A stretch of 64,000 bases of DNA, taken from Haliotis cracherodii. Taxonomy: Eukaryota. The notes under the pieces are model-generated. The model was not told the DNA's origin and did no database searches. It was given only the letters and a program-made list of their open reading frames with translations. A program made the translations under genes and the position numbers. Shown in pieces: positions 9,901 through 44,934 of the stretch (the first letter of the stretch is position 1; every line of letters starts with the position of its first letter). Location of the stretch: the NCBI RefSeq assembly GCF_022045235.1, contig NW_027266268.1, forward strand, positions 6,138,001 to 6,202,000, in the 5' to 3' direction.

Positions 9901-12269
9901 TGGGTTTAACGCCGCTTTTAACAGTATTCCCGTTATATCACGGCGTGTCAGCTTAATGTAGGAGGAAAGCTCGAAGTGATGCAGGTCTCTGACGTTTACC
10001 ACTTCGGTGAAACCCACGAGCACGAGTATGGTGCTGACAAACCTAGAAACATAATTGTGGCGAACCGGGATTCGAACCAACAATCATAGGTTTCTGACGT
10101 GCCCAGCGGACGCAACTCTGCACAGCGAATCGCTGGAATACTGCTAAATGCGGCGTTAAGCCCAACTCACTCACTCACTCACTCACTCACTCACTCACTC
10201 ACTACATGTGCACATAGAACTCCGATGACTTCCCGAGTCAAGGGATACGAGAGTTGGAATCTGATTGGTCAGTCGGATGGATGTAAAAGGGACATGACTC
10301 GTAATAGGCGTTTGTGGGCACGAAATTCCAGCCTCTTTCGACAAGGGTAGAAACTTGACTTTTAAAGTTAGTTAAATCCTCTGCCCCGGGAAGATGCACA
10401 AGTATAAATAGCAGAGGGTGTTCACAACTTTTCGAGTCTGGTACAAAACAATTATTTGACTTGAAAACGCCGGGGGGGGGGGGGGGGGGGGGGGAGGGGG
10501 GGGGGGGGGGGGTGTGTGTGTGTGTAAAAGTGGGATTATACGTCGCGTCAAGATTATTTGACTTAGAGACCCACACTCGTGTGTGTGTCTTTCTACCTGT
10601 ACCATATCTGAGCTCACGCAATGCAATAGGTTTGTGTGTAAAAGAAGTTATCATAAGAATTGCAGTTCATTTTGTAACAAACCAAAACAAAACCTAAAAC
10701 TCTATTCAGGTGTTCGACGGGACGTCATGACTAGATTATAGCTAAACGCGTCGTAAAACAATAATCACTCACTCACTCATAATCAAGAGTACACGTCTGT
10801 CAAGCATCTCCTCACTTGATGATGACTCAGCATATTCTGCGACCTACATAACTATCTACTGATAATGCAGTACAGTAAATGCAGTACTAACAAGACCGGT
10901 GGTCCCGCTGACTTGGTTGATGATTCTTACAGTTTCGTATATCGATGCTCATTGTGCTTGATTATTTACAGACCGCCGTCACATTGCCGGAATATTACTG
11001 ATTGCGGCGTTAAACATCAAACAAAACATACCATATATTTCATATATATTTTCAAGATTTCTGTCTCCAGGTATGGCAGTACTTCAAGATGTACGCAGAT
11101 GCCTTCAGTCTGAGCAAACACATCCAATACAACAAAGAGATCCTGTCTGTGAAGAAATCACGTGACTACGAGCAGACCGGAAGATGGGATCTGCAGGTCA
11201 GAGATCACAAGACCGGAAGTGAGGAGACGCAGGTGTTTGATGCGGTGATGGTGTGCACCGGTCATCACGCCAGCAAGAACATGCCGGACTTTACAGGTCA
11301 AGATGACTTCCAGGGGAAGATCCTTCACTCTCAGGACTACAAGGACTGGACCGGGTACACTGGGAAGAGGGTGGTGGTTGTCGGGGTCGGCAACTCAGGC
11401 GGGGACGCAGCTGTGGAGCTGAGCAGGGTGGGGCAGGTGAGAGATGACCTGAAAGGCCTAGCCTCTATTTGGCATTATTTTGTAAGATGGGACTTTGTTC
11501 ATTGCGTGTTATTGTTATCACTGGATTTTTTGGTCCAGATATTTATTCAATATAGTGTTGTCTCCATAATATCAGAAGGTATTGTTAATAAATATTGGAT
11601 CATACAAATGAGTTTCTACAATGCATGAAGACTAGATTCTTGTTTCTCCAGGTGTTTCTTAGCACGAGGCGAGGTACCTGGGTGATCAACAGAATTGCTG
11701 ACAATGGTATCCCTGCCGATTTTCAACTAACAACACGTTTTACCAATAAGATTCGACACTCCTTGTCCCAAAAAACACTGAGTGGTATACTTCAGAAACA
11801 GCTCAATAAACGTTTCGATCACGAGCTGTACTCCTTGAAGCCGAAACACTCGGTGTTCGCCCAACATCCTACAGTAAACGATGACATGCCCAATAGAATC
11901 GCGACTGGCCTTTTGAAGATTAAGGCTGACATTAAGAGGTTTACCAAGACTGGCGTGGAGTTTGTTGACGGGACGGTGGAAGATAACATAGACGTTGTCA
12001 TACTGGCTACAGGTTATGTATTCGGCTTCCCGTTTATTGACAAGTCTGTGATCGATGTTCAGAAGAATAAGGTCAAGATGTTCAAGTATATGTTTCCACC
12101 TGATTTGCCGAAACAGACATTGGTGGTGATTGGTTGTTTTCAACCTCTCGGCGCCATTATGCCTATTGCGGAATTACAGTGTCGCCTAGCAACCAGAGTA
12201 TTCAATGTAAGCAATTTTCTTTTCTTGGTTATTTGTTGGGAACATTAGAGAGAGACACTCACACACAGA

Positions 12270-12350
<81 letters not shown>

Positions 12351-13732
12351 CCTTTTACCTCAAAATGGGAACAGAACTTTGAACATCCGTTGTGTGTGTG
12401 TATTCCATGGTATTCCATATGTCTTGCTCTCTGTCCTCCAGGGCACCTGCAGTCTCCCGTCAAAGTACGAGATGTGGGCAGACATTGGGAAGAAGGAGGC
12501 AGCCATGGCGGCGAGATATGTCGAATCCCAGCGACACACGATCCAGGTTGACTATGTCGACTTCATGGACGAACTGGCGGAACTTGTAGGATGCCGACCA
12601 GCTACAGGTGAAGACTAGGTTATCTCCCCTTAAAACGTTAGAATTTATAACACCCAGTTTTGTTTCTTCGCTGATGAACTCCGAGATCAGCAATATTCAA
12701 GGGCTTTGAGAGCAACTATAAGTGAGGACTTGGTTATACACCCTTTGAACAACACCTTCCTCAATTGTTATATGTAACTGATTGAGTTAGTAAATGAGTA
12801 TGTTTTTTGCGCCGCCTGTTGCAATATTCAAGCAATATAAGGGCAGGGGACACCAGAAATCACTTCACATTTTGTACCCATGTGGATAATCGAACCCATG
12901 CCTTTGGCGTGCCAAGCGGACGCTTTAACCATGACAATACCCCATCGCCCCTAAAATGTAGGTAATATATTGGGGAGTACTGTTATTTCCCCTTAGTACC
13001 ATACCTTGCCTTGGTTGTTGTGGAAAGCTAGTTTGGGACCATCTTCCATTGTGCTGTTCCTGACCTTACCTGACCTCACCTGACCTCACCTGACCTTACC
13101 TGTCCATTTCGCGCTAATCGCCCATCGTTGATTTACGCGGAGATCAGCAATACCCATGCCTTTAAATTATTGAATCTGATCTGCAAACCGGTGATTGACA
13201 TCATGAGCATCAATCCACGCAATTGGGAAACGATGACCTCCAGTCATCCAAGTCACCGAGCCTTCCCATCGGGTACATTTAGTCGCCTTATGAAACATAT
13301 ATTGGAAGTTACAGCTGAATTTGCCTAGTAAGAGAGAATACAATTTTAATGATCCATTCCATAACCCTGTGTAGAGACACAAAACGTAAGTTCCTGGTCC
13401 GCTTTTTAATCTGACCACTATGAAATAATGTTGCCTCTCTTAATTCTGTTCAAGGTCATCTTCTGTTGACCGATCCGAAACTTGGACTCAAGTGCTACTT
13501 CGGACCAACCACCCCCTACCAATACCGCCTGAGGGGGCCGGGCACGTGGTCGGGGGCCCGGGAGGCTATCATGACCCAGACAGATAGAATGGAGTACCCC
13601 TTTAATACCAGACCCCTCCCTGAAGGTACAGAGACACAGTCGTCCCACAGACTCCTCACACTGGTGTTGCTGGTGCTGGTCATTGCCGTCCTTTACAAAC
13701 TGTTTTTTAAAAGCGATGTGACGAGTTTGTAG
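6961..13732 (+). CDS. FMO5: Flavin-containing monooxygenase (FMO5-like), copy A; join(6961..7218,11071..11436,11652..12206,12442..12607,13455..13732), 540 aa
   Basis: FAD GAGCSG; FMO fingerprint [11 protein letters not shown]; NADPH GVGNSG; ATGY motif; C-terminal TM helix. All four introns GT-AG and the joined frame is open. The symbol denotes family-level similarity, not proven orthology. Confidence 0.95.
7346..7506 (+). mobile_element. tRNA-derived SINE family 1 (~165 bp, (ACTC)n tail)
   Basis: A box TAGCCTTGTGAT, B box GGTTCGATTCC; 12-bp TSD TCAATCTATGGA at 7334 and 7507. Confidence 0.85.
8044..8322 (+). mobile_element. tRNA-derived SINE family 2 (~280 bp, widely spaced A/B boxes)
   Basis: CCCAGTCGTCTAAGGCG head, GGTTCGAATCC B box, (ACTC)n tail. 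Confidence 0.8.
8758..9588. repeat. GC-rich ~19-23-bp tandem repeat (CCCTGGCGGAGGGACTGAC variants) in FMO-A intron 1
   Basis: Direct inspection. Confidence 0.9.
10822..10836 (+). promoter_or_regulatory. Candidate antioxidant response element (ATGACTCAGCATATT)
   Basis: Matches RTGACnnnGCA with an AT-rich flank; homologues at 8350 (A) and 17662 (B). Confidence 0.45.
12276..12347. repeat. (GA)n microsatellite
   Basis: Direct inspection. Confidence 0.95.
13061..13100. repeat. (TGACCTYACC)x4 array = AGGTCA DR4 half-sites on the minus strand
   Basis: TGACCT at 13061, 13071, 13081 and 13091. Confidence 0.85.
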
Positions 13733-14904
13733 AGTGCTGTTTACTCGCTGTTGTATCATCTTTTATTCAAATATTTACACTTATGAAATTCAGGATCAGG
13801 GAAATCAATACTACCGTTGCCTTTACCCTTGACATGGCCAGTGTCAAATCTTATTTCACCAGGGAAAAGGTCAGAGAAAGGGATCCCTGAACCAACTGGA
13901 ATTACAGCTGAAATCTTAATCGGTTATAACATGTCTACGCCTCGACTGTGTTTTGTAATTAAAAAATGATGCCGAAATATGTTTTCATATGCGGAATAAT
14001 ATTCATGAACTGCTTCCGGAATCAACCACTTCGAGCGACTACTCAGACTAAAACCTTGTTATGGTTGATACATAATTATACTATGATTTTGCATAATGAC
14101 CTACAATTGCGTCAGTTTTACTTGTTAAAATGCACGTTCACAATAGCCAGTCAATTCCTGGCTCAGGGTCAATAGCAACAACATGGCGTTATCATTATGT
14201 TTAATCAGTAACTCTAGTATAAAGTTGTTTTGTGTTGGGAGGTAATAGAAGGTATGTGCTGTATGTACTGTGATTAAAATGTCTATGTTACGTTGGGACA
14301 ATACCACAATTTTTATGTCTTAACAGTTGCTTGCAGATATTTCATGTTATATTTTATACGAAAATCTAAAATGGAAATGTACACCAAACAAAACTTTGAT
14401 ATATGTTTCAATTTGTATTTGCTCAGATTTAACCACTTCAATATCAACACGTTCTAGGCATCAGCTAGACACAAGCGTGAGTGAGTGTGTGGGTTTAAAC
14501 CCGCTATGAACTGTATTATATCACGGAATGTCAACATCAAGTCCAAGTCATGTAGGTCATACGTGTACCACTTTGGTGAAACCAAAGAGCACGGGTATGG
14601 TGCTGACATGCTAGAAACATAGGTCTAATTCTGGGATTCGAACCCAAGATCATGTCTTTAAGGCACAGCTTTGCACAACAAATCGCGTCGGTCAGACAAC
14701 TGGGCCTCGCGTGCGCCTGGTTACATAACAGTGCGTGGTTACATAACTGGTGGTGTGATCCAATGTCTGTCAATATGTTTAGACTGTCGTTTAGAACTGA
14801 TTTGCAATACCCTCTTTCTATTAAGATGGGGTCAACTGTGTAGTAGGACTGACAAGTTACTATCAGTGTTGTTTATTCCCCTGTTAGACGTACTCACGCT
14901 GTTT

Positions 14905-15905: not shown

Positions 15906-18442
15906 ATGGCGAAGCGGGTGGCGATCATCGGGGCTGGGTGTAGCGGTCTCACTGCCATCAAATGTTGTGTTGACGAAAAGCTGGAGCCGTTTTGTTTTGA
16001 GCGAACTGACGAGCTCGGGGGATTATGGAACTTTACGGAAAAAGTCCGCGAGGATCAGGGGTGCGTGATGAAGTCGACTGTCATCAACACCAGCAAGGAG
16101 ATGATGTGTTACAGCGACTTTCCTATACCTAAAGAGTTCCCCAATTTCATGCACAACACGCAGGTAACCGTAGTTCATGTGGTCAATTAAGTGTTTGTTC
16201 ACATCGATTGGGGCCCTATAAGGGTTGCATATTTTATTTAAAATGTATTCATGGTAAAATCATCTCTACGACAGGTGACACTGATATTAATGTGAGGAAA
16301 ACAAAATTAATAAGATAACGAAAGCGCCAATCATCTGTTGGCTTCCTTTGTTAGCTTGTACCCTTTGTTATTTTCCACCTTTTATTATCTTATTAATTTT
16401 GTTGTCTTTACATGTACATATATAGACTCTTTGCCTCATGTCATTCATTCATCTGATGAAGGAGTAAGCATATACTCCGAAAACGTTGTGTTCCTCATAA
16501 TAAAGAAGTGAAGTTGACATCCATATATTCTCTTCCTTGTGTGCTTTACTGTTACCTTTTTATACAAACATGGCTTAGAAGTCAACAAAACAAAATGATG
16601 ATAATCATTGCGGTATCTGTAGGAATTTTGTTAGAAATAAAAATTTAAAACATTTTTTTTGTGTGTATGGGGTTTTTTTGCAGTGTGGATTGGGGCATAT
16701 TTTCTATAACAATTTTGATATGTATTAAAAGCAATACAGGCCACCCGAGGTATAGCAAAGGATGGTTCCATATGTATATGTTCACTGCAGCATCAACCAA
16801 CATTTTTGATTCCCTGTCAGAGCTCCTTTCCCTAAAAGCATACCAGAAACGTATGGTCGAGGGTTCGAGCCTGGTTCATATTGTTTGAGCACAATGCCCG
16901 TCCTTTCACCAAAACGGTGAACAGTTAAGACTTGCATCGCTTTCGGCTTTCCTCCCACACCAACCTGACACACCCTGATATCTCTAAAATACTGTTTAAT
17001 CGGAGATAATCACGATTCGCTCACTAACTCGCTACACTTTTCCTCTGTCACGTCTAGGGGCACGGGTGGCCCAGTCGTCTAAGGCGCCGCGATTAGCTTG
17101 GTTCGATGATTGTGGGTTCGAATCCCGGTTCGCCCGAATTATGTTTCTAGGTTTGTCAGCACCATACCCGTGCTCGTGGGTTTCCCCAAAGTAGTAAACG
17201 TCTGAGACCTGTATCACTTCGGGCTTTCTTCCCACGTTAAGCTGATACGCCGCGATATAACGGGAATACTGTTAAAACCCAACTCACTCACTCGCTGCCA
17301 CGTCTTCTGATTAGGCGGGAAATGGGATCAGTAAGGATTAGGATAAGGGCGGAGAGGGAGATTCGGGGGCGCATGATATGTTGTAGTTCTCTTCTGTTCA
17401 TACTTACAGTAAAAGATATTTACATACATTAAGCAGATGTATGATGTAATCTCTCAGCAGTATGTGAGACACACAAATTCACTAAAACGTTATACTGCAT
17501 GTAAATGACCATACTGCACCTACCGTAGCTCTCTCTTTTCCAAACTTCTATATGCTATCTAGTGACCATCATGATCAAGATGGTGTATCCCGCCGTGATA
17601 TTGTTGGCATATTGCTGAACGTAAAACAATGCCTCACTCACTATAAGCATTATCTAACTTTATGACACAGCATTTTTTGCGACCCCAATAACGAGCTACT
17701 GATAACGCACTTTAGGACATGCGAACGAGTACGAGGCGACTAACGGGATCGAGTGGTAAGGCTCGCTGTCTTGGTTGATGCATGTCATTGTATCCCAGTT
17801 GCGAAGATCGATGCTCATGATGTCAATCACTAACATTGTTTGCTCTGATATATATGACACCAGTCCATTTGAATAAATTTTATAGAATAAAATGGGTTTT
17901 TCTCTACCAACCTTCCCAGTATTTCTAAGTGTTGAAGGTCGGGGTTCGATCCCCGGCCTCGTTATACCGAAACACGTTAAAAGATGGCACTTGTTGCTGC
18001 CCATCGCTCGTAGATAAAACAAGGACTGGTGGGCTCAGAGTCAGATTAACTGCCTGAGATGGGTATCATGTTAATGTGCGGCATGGTATCTCAGTGGACA
18101 CGCACTATAAAACCAACGTTTTTACATGTCCGGACCAGTACAAGCAGCCACACACATGTGTGTCTCTCTATTAGAGAAATAATCTTGAACGCGACGAAAT
18201 CCCTCTGTCAAGAAACGTCTTTTTCAAATCAATTGTTTTGTGCCAGAATCCACCATTTGTGCACATTCCCTGCCATTCATACTTGTATGTCATATACAGG
18301 TGAGGTGAAATGGGGTTTAACGTCGCGTCCAAGATTATTGCACGTGTGTGTGTGGCTGCTTGTACTAGTCCGGACTGATGCCTATTTATAGTGCTAGCTC
18401 ACTGAGATAGCATGCCGCAGTTTAACATGAATACCCTACTCA

Positions 18443-18483
<41 letters not shown>

Positions 18484-21400
18484 GCACGCACGCACGCACG
18501 CACGCGCGTGCGCACGACTCTACATATGCGCAATTTTTTTGAACGCTACGTTAAGCCCCACTTGAATCAAGTGGCAAAGTCAGATATAATACAGTGTAAT
18601 AGGTTTGTGTATAAGAGAAAAGTTATCTGGGAATTGTAGTTCAGTTTGCTACAAACTAAAACAAAACCTACAAAAAAAACGATTCAGGTGACCTCATGAC
18701 TCTATTGTAAACTTTTCTGACTCCAGGTTTGGCAGTACTTCAAGATGTACGCAGATGCCTTCAACCTGATCAAACACATCCAATACAACAAAGAGATCCT
18801 GTCCGTGAAGAAGTCACGTGACTACGAGCAGACCGGAAGATGGGATCTGCAGGTCAGAGATCACAAGACCGGAAGTGAGGAGACGCAGGTGTTTGATGCG
18901 GTGATGGTGTGCACCGGTCATCACGCCAGTAAGAACATGCCGGACTTTACAGGTCAAGATGACTTCCAGGGGAAGATCCTTCACTCTCAGGACTACAAGG
19001 ACTGGACCGGGTACACTGGGAAGAGGGTGATGGTTGTCGGGGTCGGCAACTCAGGCGGGGACGCAGCTGTGGAGCTGAGCAGGGTGGGGCAGGTGAGAGA
19101 TGACTTGAAAGGTCTAGCCTCTATTTGGCATTATTTTGTAAGATGGGACTTTGTTCATTGCGTGTCATTGTTATCACTGGATTTTTTGGTCCAGATATTT
19201 ATTCAATATAGTGTTGTCTCCAAAATATCAGAAGGTATTGTTAATAAATATTGAATCATACAAATGAGTTTCTACAATGCATGAAGACCAGATTCTTGTT
19301 TCCCCAGGTTTTTCTTAGCACGAGGCGCGGTACCTGGGTGTTCAACAGAATTGCTGACAATGGTATCCCTGCCGATTTCCAAATAGCATCACGTTTTTTA
19401 AGAAAGATTCTACACACCTTGCCCCAAGAAACACTGAGTGGTATACTTCAAAAACAACTAAATAAACGTTTCGACCACGAGCTGTACTCCTTGAAGCCGA
19501 AACACTCGGTGTTCGCCCAACATCCTACAGTAAACGATGACATGCCCAATAGAATCGCGACTGGCCTTTTGAAGATTAAGGCTGACATTAAGAGGTTTAC
19601 CAAGACTGGCGTGGAGTTTGTTGACGGGACGGTGGAAGATAATATAGACGTTGTCATACTGGCCACAGGGTATGTATTCGGCTTCCCGTTTATTGACAAG
19701 TCTGTGATCGATGTTCAGAAGAATAAGGTCAAGATGTTCAAGTATATGTTTCCACCTGATTTGCCGAAACAGACCTTGGTGGTGATTGGTTGTTTTCAAC
19801 CCATCGGCGCCATTATGCCTATTGTGGAATTGCAGTGTCGCCTAGCAACCAGAGTATTCAAAGTAAGAAAAAAATGTATTATTGGAAAAATGTTTATATG
19901 GGAAAATGCGTCACTCATAAATTATCTGGACAAACCTGATTTTTGTTCCGCATTGTAGTGTTTCATTGTTTAGAAAACTAAGACATTTGTAACATATGTT
20001 TGTACCTCAAAATGTATATCCGGGTTTCTTTATGATTGCGTATTCCATGATTGCGTATTCCATGGTATTCCATATGTCCTGTTCTCTGTCCACCAGGGCA
20101 CGTGCAGTCTCCCGTCAAAGTACGAGATGTGGGCGGACATTGGGAAGAAGGAGGCAGCCATGGCGGCGAAATATGTCGAGTCCCAGCGACACACAATCCA
20201 GGTGGACTACATCGACTTCATGGACGAACTGGCGGAACTTGTAGGATGTCGACCAGCTATAGGTGAGGACTGGGTTATCTCCCTTTAGAACCACAATTCA
20301 GTTGTTATATATGTAGCTGAGTAAGTATGGTATTTTTACGCCGCATTTAGCAATACTCCAGCAATATCTCGGCAGGGGGCACAAGAAAATTTGCTTCATA
20401 CATTGTACCTTTGTAAGGAATCAAACCCAAGTCGCCCCCCTCCATTATCTTATAAATAGGTTAGTGATGTTGTTTCTTCTTAGTACCACACCTTACCTGG
20501 GATGTAGGGTGAAGTAAGTAGGCGAGTTCAGGAGTAAAGCGCTCGGATCAAAATTAAAATAAAGAGGTATCTACTCTACAGTGGGACTACATACAATTTC
20601 AAAACACAGTAGGTTTATCTCCTAATTCTACGGTGAAATTGTTGAATGCTTGATTCTGATTGGTCAAAAAGAGGTTTCCTTTTTGCTACGGACACCGCCT
20701 TTAAATATATTAAGCCTTTTTACAAAAGACGTGCGTATGAATACATAGATAGCCTACATATCGATTCATAAAAAAACACCCCAATATGAACTGTAAAACT
20801 ATCTATATTTCCTCTAATACACGCTGGGTCTCTAATACCAGACAGGTATCTAATACACGCTGAGTCAAGGGCTCTCGCGAAATTAATAGACGGCATAGCG
20901 TCAAATAGAGGAAATACGGTGCTCGTGGTTTAATATCGGATGTTTTGGGCGCTCTATCCCGCAACCCTGAGTGTTTCGATGATGACGTTAAAATATTTAC
21001 GAAGGCATGTCTTTTGCATACAAAAGAAATGTTTATGAAACTATTAGGAAAATGTTCTATGGTGACCAGAATCGGAGCAATTTAAGCAATTTCCTCATTG
21101 AAACAACAATTAAATTAAAATAGAACATTATAAAAAATTGTTTGAAAAAACGTTATTCATAGCAACATGTTGTTCACAAACCTTCATGGGATTGAGTGAG
21201 TGAGTGAGTATGGTTTTACGCCGCTTTTAGCAATATTCCAGCAATATCACGGCGGGGGACACCAGAAATGGGCTTCACACATTGTACCCATGTCGGGAAT
21301 CGAACCCGGGTCTTCGGCGTGACAATCGAACGCTTTAACCACTAGGCTACCCGACCGCCCCTCATGGGATTGATATTCGTTGCCACCTCCGTCATGTTCT

Positions 21401-23370
21401 GGCAGAAGAAGATTTGAAAGTCCATCAGTCTGTCAGAAAACACTCGTCCATTCGAAAAGCCACGAAACCAATGTCCCGACATCATTGAAGTCAAACTTGA
21501 TAAAATCAATTTCAGAACACGCACAATTCAGAAAACCATACACGAACCACTATTTCTGGGCCACGAATGTCTCATTTTATTTACATTCTGGCTTGGAATC
21601 CATGAAATCTTGAAATTGACAGGTCACACCATGCAAATAGGCCCTACCTCGTGTCAAAATGTCCGGCTCGTCTGAAGGCTAAAATGCGTTAATGCTGAAC
21701 CACATCATAGATCGGGGTTGTCATCTTGCTTCATTTAACTAGTTACAGAGAATATAAACAAGATTGTCAGCCATTGACAGCTGCGAGGTGTGAGGAACCA
21801 TGATGTAGGTCAAGTTCTGCCACATCCCAGTTCGGGGTGGAGACATGTATTTTGATGTTATTATTGTTTACTGGGGGTAATTGCTAACTAACTAATAACA
21901 CTTACTCATGTTAAATGTATAATATAATGTTAATTCATTAAGTTTGTTGTAGAAATATATACGTTTAGCATTTTAAGACCCTTTTGTTCAACCTGTCACC
22001 CCTACGATGGAAATGGCATGTTCGATTTCCAAGAAATGACCTCTCTCCCATAAAAGACATCGCCAGTGCAGAACGGGGTGGTAGAAATTAACACATTTGT
22101 CTTTGGACATAGTTTTGAGTGTGTGTTTTTTTTTGTCAACTTCTTTTTTTTTTAAACTATGAGTTTTAAACACTTATTTTGAACTACTTAAGACTATGCT
22201 GTTTTTAAGCTTGAACTTGAGTAATAATTCTTACATATATAACTACCTGTGACCACTTCTCGGAATATTCTAAGATTGCGGACCTGCGTTACTGTGTTGT
22301 AACACGTTGCAAGAGAGCACCGTTTTCAAACCGTTGGTGCCGTCATGGTAGAATGGAGATAAACCTATCTACATGTACTCTACAGTGGGACAATATCAAA
22401 TTTTAAAACGCATAAGGTTTATCTCTTAATTGTGCCCGTGCCGTGTCGTGTCGTGCCGTGCCGTGCCTGACCTGACCTGACCTTAACAATTCATCTCGCG
22501 CTAATCGACCATCGCTGGAAGAAATCCACATTTGACACACATTCCTAGGATTCAAATGCCATGAATACGAAGATAAGGAATTATACCAACTAAAACAACT
22601 GACAGATTTGATTGTTTTGGATTTTGTTATTGTCGCATCATCATTATTCCTTCTATTTCACAGCAACCTTGAAATAACCGAGTCTGGACCAGACAAACCA
22701 TAAGGATCGATCCAGACCCGTGAAGATCCATGGTAGAATACGTCTTCAGCAACCCATGCTTGCCGTAAAAGGCGACCATGTTGTGGTAAGAGGCGACTAA
22801 CGGGATCGGGTGGTCAGGGTCGCTGATTTGATTGATGCATGTCATCGATCTCGCGTCGATCGATGCTCATGATATCAATCACTGGATTGTCTGATGCAGA
22901 TTTGATTATTTACAAACCGCCGTCATATAGCTGGAATATTGCTGAGTGTGGCGTTAAACAACAAACAATCCGACCACAATGAAATAATGTTTAAATTTAC
23001 TTTAATGACCTTGAATATGACCTTGTTAGTTGATGAGAGTTTCATTAGAAAGAACACTATCTCGGATTTCCATACATCCATCAATTCTATTCTAGGTCAT
23101 CTTCTATTGACCGACCCGAAGCTTGGACTCAAGTGCTACTTCGGTCCCGCAACCCCCTACCAATACCGCTTGAGGGGGCCGGGCACGTGGTCGGGGGCCC
23201 GGGAGGCCATCATGACCCAGACAGATAGAATGGAGTACCCCTTTAAGACCAGACCTCTCCCTGAAAGTACACAGAAACAGTCGTCCCACAGACTCCTCAC
23301 ACTGGTGTTGCTGGTGCTGGTCATTGCCGTCCTTTACCAACTTTTTAAAAGCGATGTGACGAGTTTGTAG
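15906..23370 (+). CDS. FMO5: FMO5-like copy B; join(15906..16163,18727..19092,19308..19862,20097..20262,23096..23370), 539 aa
   Basis: Same motifs and exon phases as copy A; GT-AG introns; open frame. Confidence 0.95.
16290..16545 (+). mobile_element. Penelope-like element terminal remnant with a hammerhead-like motif
   Basis: CTGATGA-A-GGAGTA...TACTCC-GAAAACGTT at 16453-16487, followed by AATAAA; short inverted repeat 16298-16318/16385-16403; absent from the other paralogues' intron 1. Confidence 0.5.
20572..22430. mobile_element. Non-autonomous element with a 13-bp TIR (TAGGTTTATCTCC) and a ~55-bp terminal direct repeat
   Basis: TIR 20610-20622/22355-22367; direct repeat 20572-20626/22376-22430; unique to FMO-B intron 4. 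Confidence 0.5.
21196..21361 (-). mobile_element. SINE family 1
   Basis: Near-consensus copy; TSD TCATGGGATTGA at 21184 and 21362. Confidence 0.9.
22716..22968 (+). mobile_element. SINE-like family 3
   Basis: Sequence match to the family. Confidence 0.8.
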
Positions 23371-25414
23371 AGTGCTGTTTACTCGCTGTTGTGTAGTCTT
23401 ACATTCAAATATTTACACTTGGGAAATCAAGATCAGGGAAATATCATTACTACCATTTGTTCGGCCTTTTATACACGAACATCCTGCTGAATTTACCAGT
23501 AACTTTTACATTATATTTACACACTTTTGTATGTCGTGTGTGCATTTATTTGCATGTATGTCTTTGTAGCTTGCCCGTCTTTTGGGTAGCTACAAGTTCG
23601 GGAATCGGGAATCGTGAGGGTAAAAGCAGTCGTTGGAGAAGAAATCAGTGCCAAAATAAAACTATGAAACTTGTCAAACATTCGATGGGACAGTAAGTAA
23701 ATGGAGTTCAACCACTGGGGTACCTCATTCTGAATGAGATATCACTCGAATATGTTGACTCCGAAGTGAGTGAGTTTGGTTTAACGCTTCTTTGAACAGT
23801 ATTCTAGTTATATGACGACGTGTCAGCTTAATGCTGAAGGAAAGTCCCAAGTGATGCAGGTCTCAGACATTTACCACAGTGTTGAAACCCACGACCACGG
23901 GTGTCGTGCTGACTGAACGAGAAAATTTTGGGGCGAAACGGGATTCGAACCCACGATCATAGGTTGCTGCCGTGTTCAAGGGACTTAACTCTGCACAGCG
24001 CAATCAACAACTTCGAGTGATTTCTCAGACTTGTTGACTTCCCAGATGGTTGATACATTTATTTATTTTTGCATAATGGCCTATAGTTGGGTCAGTTGTA
24101 CTTGTTAAAATGCACGTTCACAACGGCCAGTGAATTCCTGGCTCAGAATCAATAGCAACAACATGGCGTTATCATTATCTTTACTCAGTAAGACAAAGTT
24201 GTTGTGTGTTTCAAGTCAATAGAGGACTAGTGTTGTATGAACTGTGATTCAAATGTCTATGTCACGTTGGGAACAACAACACAATTTTCATATTTTATCC
24301 AAGCTGCTTCAGATTTCCATTGTGATATGTTAAAGGGAAATCTGAAAAGGAAATGTACGCCAAACAAAATTTTGATGCATGTTTTAATTCGGGTTTTCTC
24401 AAATCGAACAACTACCGATGGGAGTTCAAAGATGGGAGAGGCTGTCAATACAGAAGCTGGTCACACAACAGGTGGCTTGATCCGGTGTCTGTTAATCTGT
24501 TTAAAATGTCGCCACAGAAACCTATACCTGTGTAGAATCGAAAAACGCTCTGTACGTGTATTTGGATCGCGTCAGCTGTGTATTAAAACTGACAAATTAC
24601 TGTCAGTGTTGTTGATTTATGTATATTCGCCTGTTAGTGGAACTCACGCTGTGTGAGTCTGTTTATTGCGTATTTACATCCTTAATTCTTTAGCTTTGTT
24701 ATTATTGCCTAGTGTTAATAAATCTTTCAGCTACCAGTTGGTTTATCTTTGTCAATGCGCCTTTATGCAATCGGTTGGTCTGTTTATTTAATTTATTTAT
24801 TTTTCGATTTCATATGAGAGTATTCAATCCCGCACTTGACAATTACGCGACGACTCCTCTGCTGTACAGTTGGGATTGACGTCATAATTAATTAACCTGG
24901 GCATTTGTTATAAAAAAAACAAGTCATTCTTCGTGGTTTTGTAATCAAAACCCAAGAAAAATCAAGCTTGGGGAAGTCAGTTTTTGAGGGTCTCCAAGAA
25001 GGGCCCTAAGCCTTGTTTTCAGGAAACTACACAAAACAAGTTGTGGGTGAGGCGTTTCTGAGTGAAGCAGTGCCAGCATTAAGTGTTATTTTTCTCGAGT
25101 GAGATAACGAGTTTATATTGTCAGATAAATACAGTATTTCATAACTTAAAAACACCATAATGTCACCCGAGCATGTGCAAAAAATATTGACCGCGTTGTG
25201 CCTTGGTTCGTGGTTAGCACGAGGCTGCACATATTAACTACGGATCTGCAGTGCCCTCAATATGTTATATACAAGATGCACTATGCACCAACACACAGAG
25301 ATTATGCAGACTGCTTTAGTAATTAAAGTCGGACATGCACAGTCGGATCGCAAGCAGACTCTGTTGAGTGTGGTCCAAGTACAAGCCATACCCATGCCCT
25401 TGGTAAAATTTAAA

Positions 25415-25675
25415 ATGACCAAGCCGGTGGCGATCATCGGAGCCGGGTTTGTGGTTTCGTTGCCGTCAAATGTTTTGTAGGGAAACGTTCTAGACATTTT
25501 ATTTTGAGCGAAATGACGATATGGGGTCGGGGGATTATGTAATTTTACAGAACAAATCCGCCAGGATAAGGGGTGCGTGATGAGGTCGACTGTCATCATC
25601 ATCAGGAAGGAGATGATGTGTTACAGCGACTTTCCTATACCCAAAGAGTTCCCCAATTCCATGCATCATACGCAG
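25415..25675 (+). pseudogene. Orphan, frameshifted FMO exon 1 (exons 2-5 absent before copy C)
   Basis: MTKPVAIIGAG then frameshift and stop; downstream remnants [23 protein letters not shown] and donor CAG|GTTAAT. Intron-1 homology continues to about 26740. Confidence 0.9.
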
Positions 25676-26744
25676 GTTAATATTGCTTTTTGTCCCGTGG
25701 CTGGGTGTTAGTTTACATGAAATGGGGCACTGTATGGGTTGCATATTTTATTGAAAATGTATTCATGGTCATCTCTACGAGAGGTGACACTGATATTGTT
25801 ATTATTTATATTCGCCGCCTTGGGTAGCATAGCGTTTAAAGCGGTTGCTCGTCATGCCGAAGACCCGGGTTCAAAGTGTGAAGCCCGTTTCTGGTGTCCA
25901 ATTTATGGTGTTGCTGGAATATTGCCAAAAGCAGTGTAAAACCCACCTAACTCACCCACTCAGTAAGTCATGTGAGCCTGAATATTGTGCAGCTTGTTAG
26001 TGGTTTGTATATCCAAGTTTGTTTGCCAACACTGAATAACATGTTGCCTTATATTTACAATTAGCATAAGGAAGTTAAGTGTTCGAAATTGATTTCTCAA
26101 CAGCAGTTGCAGTATCTGCACACTGTTAACTATTTTACCAACATGGCTTGGAAGTCAACAAAAAACAATGTTCTGATGTGCGTGTAGCGGGGAGTTGTAG
26201 AACAAATTATTTAGATATCATAGTTAATTAAATCAATACGGGCCACCTCAAGTGTATTAAATGAATGTTCACATGTTTGTCTGGTCCAATCTGCATTAGT
26301 TTCAGATTAGCTGCATCATCATCCAACATGCACTCACTTGTGACTCCCTGTCAGAGTTACTTCACTTAAAAGGATGCCAAAAACGTTTGGCCGAAGGTTC
26401 GAACCCCAGCTTTTATGGCCTGAGCACCATACCGTACACGTGGGTTTCACCAAAATGTTGAACCGCTACGACCTGCATCACTTGGGGATTTCCTCCCACG
26501 TCAAACTGACAGCCCTGATATGAGTGAAATACAGTCTAATCGGTTTTAACACAACTCCCAAAGTCACTGAATTATTCCCCTGTCACATCAATTGATTAGC
26601 AGGAGTGGGGATCAGTAAGGATAAGGATTAGGGGGGAGAGGAGGATTCGGGGGAGCATGATGTGTGGCTGTTCGTTTATAAAAAAACGTCTCTTCTATAC
26701 ATTACTATACATTACAGTAAAATATATTTACAAACACAACATAT

Positions 26745-33473: not shown

Positions 33474-36400
33474 ATGGCTAGGCGTGTAGCGATCATTGGA
33501 GCCGGGTGTAGCGGTCTCACTGCCATCAAATGTTGTATAGACGAAAAGCTGGAGCCGTTTTGTTTTGAGCGAACTGACGAGCTCGGGGGATTATGGAATT
33601 TCACGGAAAAAGTCCGCGAGGATCAGGGATGCGTGATGAAGTCGACTGTCATCAACACCAGCAAAGAGATGATGTGTTACAGCGACTTTCCTATACCCAA
33701 AGAGTTCCCCAATTTCATGCATAACACGCAGGTAAACGCAATACCTATATCGCATGTGCAGATGTTTGCTTGCATTAAATGGGGCACTATATGGGTTGCA
33801 AATTTTATTGAAATTGTATTAATGGTAAAATCATCTGTACGACAGGTGACACTGACCTTGTTATTATTTCCGATTGGCTGAATGTTATGCAACTTGTTGG
33901 TGATTTGTTTATCCCAATTTGTGCGCCAGCACTGATTAACATTTTTCTCATATTAACAATCAGTATAAGGCACTATCAGCATTCTTTGCTCATTTTGCCT
34001 GTGTATAAATTATGCAAATAAGCCCGTTTTACGCCAAAGATATTTTCCCTGTCAAGCGGGGCAAACCACGATCGAGAGGGTTTCTCATGCGCTTTGTCTT
34101 TAGTTTCCCGGAGCTGCACATACACAGCAGCAATGCCTAATGTTCTCGACATGAAGGGAAAGTTGACTATTGGTATGTTGAAGTCATCCCTCTTGTCATT
34201 CATTCTTGTGGAGAGCGTTTTGTCACTCTGAATCTGGGGGCACGGGTGGCCCTGTCGTCTAAGGCGCCGCGATTCGCTGTGCAGAGTTGCGTCCCTTGGG
34301 CACGCCAGAAACCTGATTGTTGGTTCGAATCCCGGCTCACCCCGATTATGTTTCTAGGTTTGTCAGCACCATACCTGTGCTCGTGGGTTTCACCGAAGTG
34401 GTTAAACGTCAGAGACCTGCATCACTTCGGGCTTTCCTCCCACATTAAGCTGACACGCTGTGATATAACTGTATTACTGTTAAAAGCGGCTTTAAACCCA
34501 ACTCACTCACTCACTCAGAATCTTTATACATAGATCTAAAAATGAAATAGAAGAGGTGGTCTGACTAGTCTCCTTTATTTCTAGTTTCACATATTGTTTT
34601 CTCAGTAAACTTCAGATGGCATTCACTTTCATTTTAAACAAATTATCCTGAACCTCTGAATATAGATACGTCACGGTATCTGTGGTCACCACGTTTTGTA
34701 ACAAAGCCCAATGAATCAAGGAAAGAAGTTTTCTTTTTCCTTACATTTGTCCTGTGGGTAGTGGTGTACAAAGTGGAACAATCAGATGTTTTGACAGAAT
34801 GGAACTTGGTTCTTTTCTGAGAATGCAAGACGTGAAGACAATCCTTTGAGTTTTTATACTTCATGTAAATGGTAATACGGTACCTTCTCTTTTCCAATGA
34901 CGATCATACTCTAGATAGAGCCACCCGCCGTGATATTGCTGGGATATTGCTAAACGTAGCGTAAAAAAACACTCACTCACTCACTGACTCATAATCAAAA
35001 GCACGTGTTCGCCAAGCGTTATCTCACTTAAATGATGACTCGACTTATTTTGTGACCCACATAACGATCTACTGATAACTGACCTACTTCAGGACACGCA
35101 AACGGGTACGAGACGGCTGACGGGATCGGGTGTTCAAGGCTCGCTGACATGGTTGTTGCATGTCATCATGCATAATCGTGATACAAAAAAATATTATTAA
35201 AAATTATTATTCTCACCATCCGCCCAATGCTAAAATNNNNNNNNNNNNNNNNNNNNNNNNNNNNNNNNNNNNNNNNNNNNNNNNNNNNNNNNNNNNNNNN
35301 NNNNNNNNNNNNNNNNNNNNNNNNNNNNNNNNNNNNNNNNNNNNNNNNNNNNNNNNNNNNNNNNNNNNNNNNNNNNNNNNNNNNNNNNNNNNNNNNNNNN
35401 NNNNNNNNNNNNNNNNNNNNNNNNNNNNNNNNNNNNNNNNNNNNNNNNNNNNNNNNNNNNNNNNNNNNNNNNNNNNNNNNNNNNNNNNTAACAACGGCAG
35501 TACACAATTGAGTGGGAGTACAATATTCAATGGCAGTATAAGATGTGAGAGCAGTGGAAATGAGAATGACAAGAATGATACTGACCTCGCCGCAACAGTG
35601 GTCAAGCTTCCGAGATAGGCCTAGGCTGAACAACAATGGTGAAAAGTGATCTTCACGCGAAGGCTGGTCTTGATGTAATGTCAGATGAAATGTGAGATGA
35701 GACAGGGGCGCGCCCATTCCACTAATATGGTCTAACCATCTTCAAGCACTTTCTACACAGTGCCAGACCAGTCCAGTGTCACTTGAACATCACAGAATAT
35801 CCACATGTTTCTAAATCGCTTGACATTCATCCATGCTCTTCCGGACGTTTGCAGATAATTCGAGCATCTAAATATAATGACCCCCTCACCACTGCTTACA
35901 TTAAATACTGTTACACTCTTGACAACTAATCATTGGTCAATAAACTTCCACTGAATGTCAACAGATTCAATGTAATACAGTTACAATCATTGTTTAACAT
36001 TAAAACAGTCATATAACAGTGTCAATCAGTGGATTGTCTGGTTCAGACTCGATTATTTCAGACCGCCGTCATATAACATGAATATTGCTGAGTGTGGTGT
36101 AAAACAACAAACAAACCAAACATGCGAACGATTAACGAATACCTGTCAATATGTATGTAAATAATCGAATCTGGACCAGACAAGCCACTACTGACTGACA
36201 CCATGAGCATCGATCTACGCAATTGTGATACTATGCACTGGACTCTGTGTTCTCAAATGAATCTTCCCGAGGCAGGGGATAAGAGAGGTGTCTGATGGGA
36301 GGGACAAAGAAGGAATATATAACTCGTAATAGACCTTCACACAAGTAGTGACATCACCAGATACTCGACCTATTATTATAATTTTTGTTATTATAATTTG

Positions 36401-36955
36401 TCAAATTATAAAATGTATATCACGGTTCATGCACTGTAATAGGTTTGTGTGTAAGAGAACTTATCATAAGAATTGCGGTTCATTTTGCTACAAACCAAAC
36501 CAAAAGCTAGAGAAAAACTATTCAGGTGACCTCATGACTCTATTGACAAGTTTTCTGACTCCAGGTATGGCAGTATTTCAAGATGTACGCAGATGCCTTC
36601 AACCTGAGCAAACACATCCAATACAACAAAGAGATCCTGTCTGTGAAGAAGTCGATTGACTACGAGCAGACCGGAAGATGGGATCTGCAGGTCAGAGATC
36701 ACAGGACTGGAAGTGAGGAGACGCAGGTGTTTGACGCGGTGATGGTGTGCACCGGTCATCACGCCAGCAAGAACATGCCGGACTTTACAGGCCAAGATGA
36801 CTTCCAGGGGAAGATCCTTCACTCTCACGACTACAAGGACTGGACCGGGTACACTGGGAAGAGGGTGGTGGTTGTCGGGGTCGGCAACTCAGGCGGGGAC
36901 GCAGCTGTGGAGCTGAGCAGAGTGGGGCAGGTGCGAGAGGACATTAAATGACACA

Positions 36956-37007
<52 letters not shown>

Positions 37008-38073
37008 CTGGCTGTGGGCGGATTGATATTCATTCACTCTGTTGTCTCCTAAATATTTAAAGGCACGGTTAAAAAAGAATTGGATCCCATATATGAGTTT
37101 CTACAATGCATGAAGACCTGATTGTTGTTTCCACAGGTGTTTCTTAGCACGAGGCGCGGTACCTGGGTGATCAACAGAATTGCTGACAATGGTATCCCTG
37201 CCGATTTGAAACTATCAACACGTTTTACCAATCAGATTCGACACGCCTTGTCCCTGGAAACAGTAAACGGTATACTTCAGAAACGCCTGAATAAACGTTT
37301 CGACCACGAGCTATACTCCTTGAAACCTAAACACTCGGTGCTTGCCCAACACCCTACAGTAAACGATGACATGCCCAATAGAATCGCGACTGGCCTTTTG
37401 AAGATTAAGACTGACATCAAGAGGTTTACCAAGACTGGCGTGGAGTTTGTTGACGGGACGGTGGAAGATAACATAGACGTTATCATACTGGCTACAGGGT
37501 ATATATTCGGCTTCCCGTTTATTGACAAGTCTGTGATCGATGTTCAGAAGAATAAGGTTAAGATGTTCAAGTATATGTTTCCACCTGACCTGCCGAAACA
37601 GACCTTGGTGGTGATTGGTTGTTTTCAACCTCTCGGCGCCATTATGCCCCTTGCGGAATTACAGTGTCGCCTAGCAACCAGAGTATTCAAAGTAAGCTAT
37701 TTTCTTTTTTTCTGGTTAGTTGCTGAGAAAATGTCTTTACGGGAAAATATCTGTCACTCATATATTGTTTGGAATGTTAAACCAAACCGTATTGAAACGG
37801 AAGTTTGTACATCCGTCTCGTGTGTGTATTCCATGGTATTCCATATGTCTTGTTCTCTGTCAACCAGGGCACCTGCACTCTCCCGTCAAAGTACGAGATG
37901 TGGGCGGACATTGGGAAGAAGGAGGCGGCCATGGCTGCGAGATATGTCGAGTCCCAGCGACACACAATCCAGGTTGACTACGTCGACTTCATGGACGAAC
38001 TAGCGGAACTTGTAGGATGTCGACCAGCTATAGGTGAGGACTGGGTTATCGCCCCTACGACATAAACCTTCTT

Positions 38074-38160
<87 letters not shown>

Positions 38161-41100
38161 CAGTTTTATACAACATTTCTAAATGACATGGCATGATAAA
38201 TATACATGGACAAATTTCGTATAACATCAGTGTTACTTACGATATTAGAGTGACAAATTTTTGAATACTTGGATTAACATAAGTATTTTAAGTATATACT
38301 CTCAGATTACCATATGTATTACATATTAACAGGAAGTGATATTCATCTTCACTAAGATCTACATTACACTGATTACAAATTCTTAATTGTCTACATATAT
38401 GTATATGTTTTCCCAATTCAATCATTAGTTTGTGGGAACTACATCCATATTGTGTTAAGGAAATTCTATATTTTCTAATATTGACATAAAAAGATAGGTT
38501 TCTGTGTATATAAGAGATTAGATGAAAGTAAAAACATTCAGAGTAGGCACCATTGTTTTTAACACATGATTTTACATCTTTATAAAAAAACACAACAGTT
38601 TTCCCATCTTATTACTTGTATCATGGGAACGAAACATTAACTACATTTGGTTTCTACAAATAGAATCGAATGCTTTTGAAAAATTCTATGAATATTACAT
38701 ACAGCTTGCCTCCTTTTGTTCTGATATATCGGTTTTTAATAGTCTGTGGTATAAACACATTATCAATGTACCCACTTCTAAATCCAGCTCCTCAACAATT
38801 TTATCTAAAGATTCGGACCAAAATGTCAAATGTTTATTAATAATTGAAATAAAATATTTGCTAAATATATTTGAAAGTGTAATACCTCTGTAATTATTTA
38901 AGATCCTTTCTTATGAAGAGGAACAATAGCACCGAATGCCAAATGTTTGGGAAAGGAGGAAATTTCCAAAATAGTGTTGACTGATAATTAAAGATATGGT
39001 AATATTGCCTCAAAAGAATATTTTTAAAATTCCGATGTTAACCCATGCATATCAGGACTTGTTTTTAAAATTTTGAACAGTTGCTATAATTTCGTCACTA
39101 GTTATTGATAGATCCAAAATATCAGTGGCCAAACTACATTCACTATCAAATCCTATATCCAGTGCATATCATCTGAAGCATCTGTAGAATCTGTACCCCT
39201 GAAAATACCCTTGTATCATTCATATAAAGCGGCCAAACCCTTTCCATATGCAATAGAAATATCTGCATAAAGCAGAGTCGATTGTGCAATTCCGAATATA
39301 TCATGAACATGTGTTACTGAATCACTATCAAATAGTAATGATACCAGGTGTTCGCAAAAAGGTGAGCGTATCCTGGCCCACCGGTGGCACCCGTCACAAA
39401 CACATGCAAAGGCAAGTCAGTTGTTCACCTGAAAAGAAATGGAAACTTGTGGCACAAGTCAAAATAGGGAATTTCATCGGACATCACTTTGGTCACTGAT
39501 ACGTCAAATTTGGAATGTCCTCCACATGTCTACCATAAAACTTTTTGAAAGGTTTAATGAGCCTGCAATGTTGTAACCTTGATCAAACAACTTCTCAACC
39601 AATGGTCTATTTCTATACTATTGTTTCCTACGTTTTTAAAGTTAACTTTTCGTAATATTGCCCAGAATTCTTTTTTACGAGGAAATCTTTCTTTTGGCAT
39701 CTCTCTGTTTTGATAAAAAAAATAATTGCTTCTTCAGTCTGCATGTAGTCGTATATTCATTTCGAACAGAGAGTGCGTCCCTTTCCTTCTTTTTCTGAAA
39801 TTGTTTCAGTTAATACAACTTTCCTTTTTATGTAATAAACACTCCCAGTCAAACCAATGAATTCCATAAATAATAATGTTATTTCTCCTACCAGTTCTCG
39901 CGAGGTCCTCTGTTCGTGATTCCAACCCATTCAAATAGTAAAATACATCATGAACCTGATTGTTTACAGCACAAATGTCAAGTCGAAAACATTTTGTTCT
40001 TCTTTTGTTTTGTTTTGTTTTTAATTTCTGTTACAGATCCGTGACGTCACCCGTGAAGATCCGTGTTAGAATAGGTCTTCAGCAACCCATACTTGCTTTA
40101 AAAGGCGATAATGCTTGTAGTAAGAGGCGACTAACGGGATCGGGTGGTCAGGCTTGCTGACTTGGTTGATGCATGTCATCGTATCCAAATTGCGTAGATC
40201 GATGCTCATGATGTCAATCACTCAATCACTGGATTGTCTTGTCCAGACTCGATTATTTACAGACCGTCGCCATATAGCTAGAATACTGCTGAGTGCGACG
40301 CTAAAAAACAAACAAACAAATAAACGTCACCACGAATCATATTCATTACCTTTCTCATTGAGATTATTTCATTTTTTATTTTTGCATTCTTTTATTTGAT
40401 CAATGATCGCAGCTTTCATATCTTCTAGCATTTTGCATAAACGTTCTTGGATTCATTTCTGTATCACCTGACAGGTACAGAAGTAGAGGTGAATAGGGGG
40501 GCTACACAACATGCTATGCGAGAAGAGGTCCACTTTTCGATATAACAACAAAGGTGATCAATTGTATTCAAAAAGGCAAAGGTCCACACATGGCGATTTT
40601 GATTGATATGGTTGGCTTTTGTCATACCTGCAGTGTAGGCTGAGAGCTACAACTGTGTACACAGAAGTAGTCGGTACCCTATGTCCTAAGATGTTATAAT
40701 TATGTTCTATCGCTGGAAGGACACCCTGTTTTGTTTTTCGGTGATGAACGCCAAGATCAGCAATATTCTAGTTATTTGAGAGCATCTATAGGTGAGGACT
40801 TGGTCATATGTACCATTGAACGACACCTTCCTAAGTTTGTATCTGTTGCTGAATTAGTAAGCAATGCCACGACAGGGTACACCAGAAATGGGCTTCACAC
40901 ATTGTACCCATGTGGAGAATCGAACCCGGGCCTTAACAGAATTGCATAGAAACAACGTCATAGGCCGCTTGCAGGCAGGGGAATCCCGATCAGCTGTAGC
41001 CAGGGTTTCAATGTAGCGCCCAGCACCATTATCAGGCTATGGGATCGATTTCAACAGCAGCAACACGTGATCGGCGAAGGTCGGGCGACCAAGAAACGTT

Positions 41101-43928: not shown

Positions 43929-44934
43929 AAGCGATGTGACGAGTTTGTAGAGTTGTGTTTGCTCGCTGTTGTATTATCTTATATTCAGATATTTACATAA
44001 TTTACACTTTGGAAATTCAAGATCAGGGAAATCAATACTATCGTCGCTTTTACCTTTGACATGGCCACTGACAATTATTACTTCGTCGGGGAAAGGTCAG
44101 AAAACGGAATCCCCAAATCAACGTAAATACTGCTGAAATCTTAATCGGCTATACCACGTCTACGCCTCGAATGTGATTATGCTGCTGAATTAAATTTTCA
44201 CACGCGGAATAATAACATGCGTCCGAGACCTACTTAATATATTTAACTTAGTTATGATGATACGGGGGCACGGGTGGCCCAGTCGTCTAAGGCGCCGCGG
44301 TTCGCTGGGCACGCCAGAAACCCCGCATTTTTTTTTTATAGGAAACATTTTTATTTGAATCGGTGCTTGTCTGGTACACCGTACCATACCATTGGAAAAC
44401 TTAAACAACTATGGGACTGGTCAGCTTAGATTTTACGTCGTTGCTTTGACACTGACAACTTGACATTCTTTGAGGGTGGGGAGGGGGTCGGTGTGCCGAA
44501 ATGCTTTTTGCGCCAAAGAATAATGACGTATTGCCTCATGTTTAACCAGAAACAAGATGTTCTATAGCCCTGTCGCATGTGGCTACTGGATGACCTACTC
44601 TGGGTTGTTTTGCCTTTTATTTAAAACATGCTGCTGAATCAACCAGTAACATGATGTTTACACAGTTTTGTAATGTTTTGTAATGTGTGCATGTTTTTCC
44701 TTTAGCTCGCTTGTATTATATTTAATATTAATATACATAAACTAATTAATGTACTGTATTAATATGTACATTTCTTAAATGTCTTACATTTTGGAAACTA
44801 CAAGATCTGTATACTGTATTAATATGAATAAACTACTTATTGAACTGTATTGATATGTATAAACTGCTCAAATGTCTTACATTTTGGAAGCTACAAGATC
44901 TGTATACTGTATACTGAATTGGTTTGTGTAAGCA

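Follow-up and report, generated by a model that had tools for sequence, protein, structure and literature searches.

Why do 18 codons of a coding exon differ more between two tandem gene copies than the intron beside them? The question is raised by a 64,000-nucleotide (nt) stretch of the Haliotis cracherodii genome (contig NW_027266268.1, positions 6,138,001 to 6,202,000; hereafter, the window), in which four intact genes for a detoxifying enzyme, flavin-containing monooxygenase (FMO), named A to D, follow one another on the same strand, each with five coding exons and GT..AG introns. Two close copies, E and F, are located 60-105 kb upstream of the window genes on the same contig, and 14 Mb away there is a seventh, less similar copy, G (60% identity). 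The original prediction, made from the DNA letters, ascribed the divergence of the segment to positive selection on substrate access. We consider it probable that the segment is the core of an island of approximately 225 nt that has escaped gene conversion in the six tandem FMO5-like genes A-F.

The variable segment

The segment occupies positions 11721-11774 of the window in gene A (forward strand, as for all features below). Exons 1 and 2 comprise 86 and 122 codons, respectively, which places it at residues 232-249, or codons 24-41 of exon 3; its counterparts are at 19377-19430 in B, 37206-37259 in C, and 52055-52108 in D. All four translations agree exactly with the peptides, coordinates, and residue numbers given in the original prediction, whose hand counts for the A-B pair were equally accurate: 13 of 54 nt differ in the segment, with nine amino acid changes and one purely synonymous codon, whereas the adjacent intron 2 differs at 7 of 215 nt. 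Twelve of the 13 differences are in replacement codons, and the remaining one is in the purely synonymous codon.

Genes A and B share a gapless identity block (A 11047-12214, B 18703-19870) that is 95.7% identical, with 50 differences over 1168 sites. When 50 differences are placed at random, at least 13 of them fall into a 54-nt interval in 6 of 200,000 placements (p ~3e-5). Five of the six adjacent bases at A 11742-11747 differ between the two genes (ACC AAT in A, TTA AGA in B). Of the four versions of the segment, that of B has diverged furthest and has the highest hydrophobicity, with a mean Kyte-Doolittle hydropathy of -0.11 versus -0.92 in A. Exon-by-exon alignments demonstrate that the A-F proteins are almost identical except at codons ~9-75 of exon 3, and the variation peaks in a protein-variable core at codons 22-50 (A 11715-11801).

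Intron 2 as a yardstick

Intron 2 of gene A (11437-11651, 215 nt) is 96.7% identical to intron 2 of gene B (19093-19307), and it is this similarity that makes the segment look exceptional. The A-B identity block extends from 24 nt upstream of exon 2 to 8 nt downstream of exon 3. We interpret it as one or more recent tracts of conversion that spare the segment; since the block spans exon 2 to exon 3, intron 2 was overwritten along with its exons. Elsewhere the non-coding sequences of the array are much more diverged. Intron 2 can be aligned between A and C over half of its length only (78% identity), between A and D over 41 nt, and between A and E not at all. In the A-B pair itself, only the last 45 of 235 nt of intron 3 are alignable, and the alignable pieces of intron 1 and of the 3' flank are ~79% identical. 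The divergence of unconverted non-coding DNA between A and B is about 20-21%, near the 24% of the segment, which argues against accelerated replacement in the segment. Intron 2, itself homogenized between A and B, is a poor clock.

The nearest A-B difference on the 5' side of the segment is at 11685, and on the 3' side four synonymous differences are clustered directly downstream, at 11795-11819, followed by 167 nt without any difference (11820 to 11986). For this pair, the unconverted patch is thus approximately 100 nt long.

The introns of the array carry several repeats of their own. Intron 2 of gene D (51185-51985) has 801 nt, compared with about 215 elsewhere, and contains a 42-nt inverted repeat with arms at 51265-51306 and 51329-51370 (95% complementary, 22-nt spacer), which looks like an insertion of the miniature inverted-repeat transposable element type. 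A (CACG)n run at 36950-37010 stands in place of the middle of intron 2 in gene C, and a (GA)n run at 12250-12340 fills much of intron 3 in gene A; because of these runs, both introns cannot be aligned to the other copies.

Synonymous divergence along the genes

To compare all six genes, we used the Nei-Gojobori proportion of synonymous differences (pS), with whole-gene statistics taken as per-codon counts or alignment columns pooled exon by exon. The divergence island covers codons 1-75 of exon 3, approximately 225 nt (A 11652-11876, B 19308-19532, C 37137-37361, D 51986-52210). Outside it, pS is 0.11-0.17 in 14 of the 15 gene pairs, A-E included, the exception being the near-identical pair E-F; in exon 2 it is 0.07-0.12 for each pair shown. 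Inside the island, pS grows from 0.12-0.18 (A-B) to 0.17-0.42 (A-C), ~0.5 (A-D), and from 0.64 to saturation (A-E).

In a scan of 528 codons that used synonymous changes only (300 permutations, lowest attainable p 0.003), the top-scoring interval fell within exon 3 for 11 of the 15 pairs, with the start at codon 1, 2, or 16 and the end at codons 65-94. In these pairs pS inside the interval is 0.45-0.84 (permutation p <=0.007). The scan gave no significant interval for A-B (codons 48-57, p=0.32), A-C (codons 40-72, p=0.13), B-C (p 0.17), and E-F. Synonymous change, on which the claim of selection turned, is raised in proportion inside the island in the 11 pairs, and the intron that had served as its yardstick is itself homogenized between A and B.

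The phylogenetic signal of informative sites changes at the same place. Outside the island, incompatibility affects 610 of 2415 site pairs (25%), and 17 different splits are represented. Inside it, only 85 of 1953 site pairs (4.4%) are incompatible, and the sites are mainly consistent with a single tree (EF|ABCD, 46 sites; ABC|DEF, 9 sites). The low, pair-independent pS and the conflicting site patterns outside the island point to interlocus gene conversion. Uniformly low pS together with a mosaic of site patterns indicates concerted evolution of the array from which one island escapes, and the combination found here, with raised pS inside the island in 11 of 15 pairs, is that of a divergence peak under conversion. 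The contrast between the segment and intron 2 is real, and it probably stems from such an island, with no proven excess of replacement over neutral change.

Several amino acid states cut across the tree of the genes: NLIKH in exon 2 of B (18727-19092), E, and F, and, in exon 5, SSYRLL in C, E, and F and KTDIK in C and F. Short conversion tracts between distant array members have left these visible footprints.

Structural location of the island

Protein searches and folding were based on exon 3 alone, with exon 2 added for Pfam. Residues 1-184 of exon 3 align with residues 211-393 of AncFMO5 (6sek, E 1.2e-65), and an AlphaFold model of this exon alone (65-row alignment, mean pLDDT 84.7) superposes on 6sek_A with TMq 0.78. 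The model contains helices at exon-3 residues 22-26, 29-37, and 40-54 (pLDDT 84-92), and the segment extends, within this predicted element, from the end of helix 1 through all of helix 2 into the first part of helix 3. The placement of the segment within the ~80-residue insertion of FMOs, which the original prediction had stated, is borne out by this alignment, the three predicted helices, and the superposition. The predicted three-helix element probably corresponds to the alpha-helical triad of the 80-residue insertion in the nicotinamide adenine dinucleotide phosphate (NADPH) domain. According to excerpts from PMC7948450, this insertion and the alpha-helical triads make a hydrophobic ridge, the tunnel runs through the triad, and Thr249 of AncFMO1 anchors a loop under it; through the 6sek alignment, Thr249 corresponds to codon 40 of exon 3, within the segment. 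The insertion is called fundamental to tunnel formation in a part of PMC9950137, and in a part of PMC10682829 it is counted among the most variable regions of the family, with the access tunnel mainly dictating substrate scope.

Variability of this stretch is a family-wide feature. Among 60 diverse FMO homologs no part of the exon-3 region is less conserved (the interval that coincides with the segment ranks 9 of 168), and the identity to the nearest outside relatives is 7-29% at exon-3 residues 22-50 versus 68-82% at residues 51-185. One face of helix 2 carries the invariant F30, I34, and L38; the variable positions 31 and 35 border this face, and the variable residues 32, 33, and 37 are on other faces. 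The B-specific changes T31L and R35L would lie on a single face of the predicted helix and broaden its hydrophobic stripe.

Related organisms and expression

The B-type segment was also observed in assembled reads. It is present without differences in run X1 (organism label A), with one difference in X9 (organism label B; 19383 A>C, Ile to Leu), and with one in X14 (organism label D; 19425 C>A, Gln to Lys), and the contigs of run X13 give no cover of it. In X9 and X14 the contig pieces adjoining the segment differ by ~2-2.7% compared to 1 of 54 in the segment, a comparison that involves one gene and two differences and so has no power. The B-type patch looks older than the split of organisms A, B, and D, and the A-B flanks, which differ by 3.3% in intron 2, seem to be of about the same age as this split. 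The reads fit an old patch with later homogenized flanks better than a recent burst of replacement.

In X14, guessed to be an RNA sample, a 1,049-nt contig joins B-type exon 2 to exon 3 and skips 215 nt; the skip is 3 nt off the modeled boundaries, where the sequence is ambiguous, and letters from the end of exon 1 are found upstream. A second contig of this run skips exactly 19863-20096 (GT..AG), which is intron 3 of B, and a third contains exon 4 followed by exon-5-like sequence. A B-type gene is thus expressed and spliced as modeled. An X9 contig with a B-type start of exon 3 has a joint from 19101 to 19264, with unknown letters between, and intron 2 of B in organism B seems to be structurally different from the A-like reference intron. 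Such a difference would date the overwriting between A and B after the split.

Maintenance of the island

Under the reading that we prefer, conversion would repeatedly overwrite the first two exons, the last two thirds of exon 3, and the final two exons, along with intron 2 in the A-B pair. The converted parts look young because they are repeatedly overwritten, and the island would stay out of interlocus conversion and retain its old tree-like divergence. Its center would encode the predicted entrance helices; in animal FMOs of known structure the triad rests on the membrane and lines the tunnel taken by substrates, and different helices may alter substrate access. The island might persist either by selection against copies with overwritten entrance helices, or because its own divergence blocks heteroduplex formation. 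Between these two we see an almost even balance, with a slight lean to selection against overwritten copies.

The codon models describe the island (75 codons, genes A-F) as a mixture of constrained and nearly free positions. The overall dN/dS ratio (omega) is 0.23 in model M0, and in model M1a 68% of codons have omega 0.04 and 32% have omega 1. Approximately two thirds of the codons are strongly constrained (for example, R29, F30, I34, H36, and L38 of exon 3). About one third change at a near-neutral rate, most of them belonging to the remaining faces of helix 2 or to the helix ends. Relaxed constraint alone, acting without conversion, was considered and rejected, as synonymous sites and intron 2 of A and B are homogenized too.

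The near-neutral rate in a third of the island codons is what one would expect of a purely neutral island, in which nearly unconstrained exposed faces of the triad drifted early, the density of mismatches blocked conversion, and no functional meaning is involved. A study by Walsh from 1987 is said, by its title, to deal with escape from conversion. The low conservation of the stretch, across 60 diverse FMO sequences as well as in the closest outside relatives, agrees with a purely neutral island, as does the fact that synonymous divergence reaches flanking codons where the protein is conserved. On the other hand, only tens of bases separate the segment from homogenized A-B sequence on either side (11685; 11820 to 11986), yet homogenization never crosses it, and the same signature in Drosophila is read as selection in the excerpted text of PMC2588116. 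We regard a purely neutral origin as possible but not favored; it overlaps with the conversion-escape reading, being its neutral branch, so that the likelihoods of the two should not be added.

The opposite extension of the conversion-escape reading, in which the triad is a selectively protected specificity cassette and helix 2 of B has undergone an adaptive hydrophobic shift (T31L, R35L) that changes the access of membrane-borne substrates, is offered tentatively, as rather less than an even chance. The six genes would then share one catalytic core through constant conversion, each keeping its own entrance helices, and overwritten copies would be purged. If true, the array would amount to a set of natural swaps of the entrance helices, with the FMO core held constant.

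Tests of positive selection

Positive selection on substrate access, as claimed in the original prediction, implies rapid replacement after A and B had become nearly identical, with omega above 1, chiefly in B. In its support, the proportion of nonsynonymous differences (pN) between A and B in the segment is 0.272, compared with 0.108 for pS over the remainder of the exon and 0.033 for intron 2. Placing T31L and R35L on one helix face, in the most hydrophobic version of the segment, is also in line with it. With six paralogs and a local clock, however, the claim finds no support. In the island, model M2a has the same log-likelihood (lnL) as M1a (likelihood ratio test statistic 0), and no class with omega above 1 is gained. 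With fixed partitions and branch lengths taken from the island, omega of the segment is 0.74 for A-F (p=0.29 versus 1) and 0.95 for A-D (p=0.86), not different from 1. It rises to 1.92 for A-F (p=0.005) and 1.74 for A-D (p=0.052) when branch lengths are set by the whole exon, including its converted part. The values above 1 arise because conversion shortens the synonymous clock.

Several observations weigh against the conversion-escape reading. On the branch leading to B, omega of the segment is 3.9 even with the island clock (p=0.017 versus 1, p=0.001 versus the other branches, post hoc), as a recent adaptive burst would predict. The codon models were fitted with a custom Goldman-Yang implementation (F3x4, pruning, L-BFGS), not with PAML or HyPhy. 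An old island in the youngest pairs, A-B, A-C, and B-C, lacks support from synonymous sites alone, and the 11 significant pairs trace back to no more than about two old splits that are independent of each other (ABC|D and ABCD|EF), which makes the coincidence of location weaker than the count of pairs suggests. The genealogy of the segment favors no tree, eight topologies being within 1 lnL unit. Finally, the read evidence consists of short Logan contigs for gene B only, some of which are paralogs placed on B, like record 1 of X1, an A-type contig.

The signal on the B branch is fragile. Without the two codons of the ACC AAT to TTA AGA cluster, which is possibly a single mutational event, omega falls to 2.3 (p=0.21), and correction for four terminal branches gives p of 0.07 for a segment and a branch that were chosen post hoc. 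The lengths of the A and B branches derive largely from sequence exchanged between these two genes. On the other terminal branches, omega of the segment is 2.9 for A (p 0.36), 1.05 for C (p 0.94), and 0.11 for D (p 0.055). The B-type segment is already present under three organism labels, whereas its flanks look as young as the split of these organisms. There is no solid evidence of positive selection on the segment, the claim is unsupported, and we consider this explanation unlikely.

Transfer of the B segment from a distant paralog by a short conversion tract is very improbable. The five of six adjacent bases changed at 11742-11747 do resemble a single event, and Pro at codon 39 of exon 3 is common to B, E, F, and G. 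However, a six-frame search of the whole assembly (1.18 Gb) gave 23 matches, of which the close ones are A-F and G only, and revealed no donor with a B-like segment; B differs from E and F at ~30 of 54 bases, and synonymous change between A and B within the segment is not raised (1.7 of 12.3 sites). An artefact of assembly or collapse in this multi-copy region, where the surroundings of the segment are 95-97% identical among paralogs and some contigs are placed on a copy other than their own, is barely conceivable, given that the B-type segment recurs with 0-1 differences in three runs from three studies, on one spliced contig among them, and that reading frames are open with GT..AG introns in all seven five-exon genes A-G.

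Relation to known systems

The array is a further instance of a known evolutionary pattern and involves no new kind of mechanism. Mammalian FMO paralogs are old and have diverged along their whole length; here, unlike there, all parts but the triad are kept nearly identical. A model of the RHCE/RHD pair is attributed to Innan, 2003, and gene conversion among paralogs was reportedly found by Casola and Hahn in 2009 to create false signals of positive selection. The shift of segment omega from 0.74-0.95 to 1.7-1.9 once converted sequence sets the branch lengths is of the same kind. In structural terms, the variable stretch is at the same sequence position as the triads of AncFMO5 (6SEK), AncFMO2 (6SEM), AncFMO3-6 (6SE3), and AncFMO1 (7AL4), and three helices are likewise predicted here; the literature credits this insertion with control over the channeling of substrates.

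A similar case is block Pre28 of Drosophila, for which excerpts from Osada and Innan (2008; PMC2588116) describe a local divergence peak between converting duplicates, a signature that Teshima and Innan proposed for selection against overwriting. Both systems combine low overall divergence of paralogs with a sharp local peak, inside which the tree differs from that outside, and in both the peak is rich in amino acid differences and is present, here for gene B, in related taxa. They differ in that the abalone array has six genes and its peak is located on a defined structural element of an enzyme. Furthermore, the control that would exclude relaxed constraint, flat divergence between orthologs across the peak, covers here only gene B and has no power.

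The locus is a worked example of how conversion among tandem paralogs mimics positive selection, since omega of the same 18 codons depends on the sequence that provides the clock, and a caution for dN/dS analyses of tandem paralogs in general. The data single out the triad as the one part where differences are permitted, or demanded, among six enzymes that are nearly identical elsewhere. The six genes thus constitute a ready-made panel for the role of the triad in substrate range.

Gene models and other features of the array

Exons were mapped by tblastn with a full-length FMO5-like protein (P0156) and by inspection of junctions. Gene A (6961-13729) consists of exons 6961-7218, 11071-11436, 11652-12206, 12442-12607, and 13455-13729, the last two of which are joined through a split codon. 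Gene B (15906-23367) has exons 15906-16163, 18727-19092, 19308-19862, 20097-20262, and 23096-23367; gene C (33474-43925) has exons 33474-33731, 36565-36930, 37137-37691, 37868-38033, and 43672-43925; and gene D (49064-54164) has exons 49064-49321, 50819-51184, 51986-52540, 52766-52931, and 53911-54164.

The translation of exon 3 matches the FMO-like family PF00743 at profile positions 210-392 (E 4.3e-67, 227 bits, gathering cut-off 22), and that of exon 2 matches it at positions 86-205 (E 4.5e-40, 138 bits). The GxGxxG motifs for flavin adenine dinucleotide and NADPH are IIGAGCSG in exon 1 and VVGVGNSG in exon 2. Exon 2 also carries the FMO fingerprint FxGxxxHxxx(Y/W), the ending with Y being a known variant; a part of PMC10682829 prints it with a W(P/D) ending. 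Exon 5 encodes a hydrophobic run of 15 residues, as read from the translation, in agreement with the hydrophobic C-terminal helix of the family. The genes are flavin-containing monooxygenases of animal clade I (PF00743), all the features tested being present.

The closest outside protein is 76% identical, and the matches in a library of 50% clusters are 50-66% identical; none of the outside homologs retrieved was close enough for dN/dS. The named best relatives are molluscan proteins of at most 71% identity, from the scallop Mizuhopecten and the land snail Candidula (71%) and from the sea slugs Elysia and Aplysia.

Between genes B and C, at 25350-25726 (tblastn match 25526-25678), there is a degenerate isolated FMO fragment similar to exon 1, with 43% identity to residues 38-88 of the probe; its DNA is ~78% similar to that of gene A in the 5' region. 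The fragment is apparently what remains of a partial duplication. At the 3' ends of the genes, the T run before the stop codon of C (43890-43940) and D (54129-54179) is shorter in A (13690-13740) and B (23330-23378); there, the frame is shifted past the C/D stop, which adds a common C-terminal tail, KSDVTSL, and the C-F proteins end with QLFF. Intron 1 of gene A contains a minisatellite at 8761-9587, with 43.7 copies of a 19-nt unit and 80% matches.

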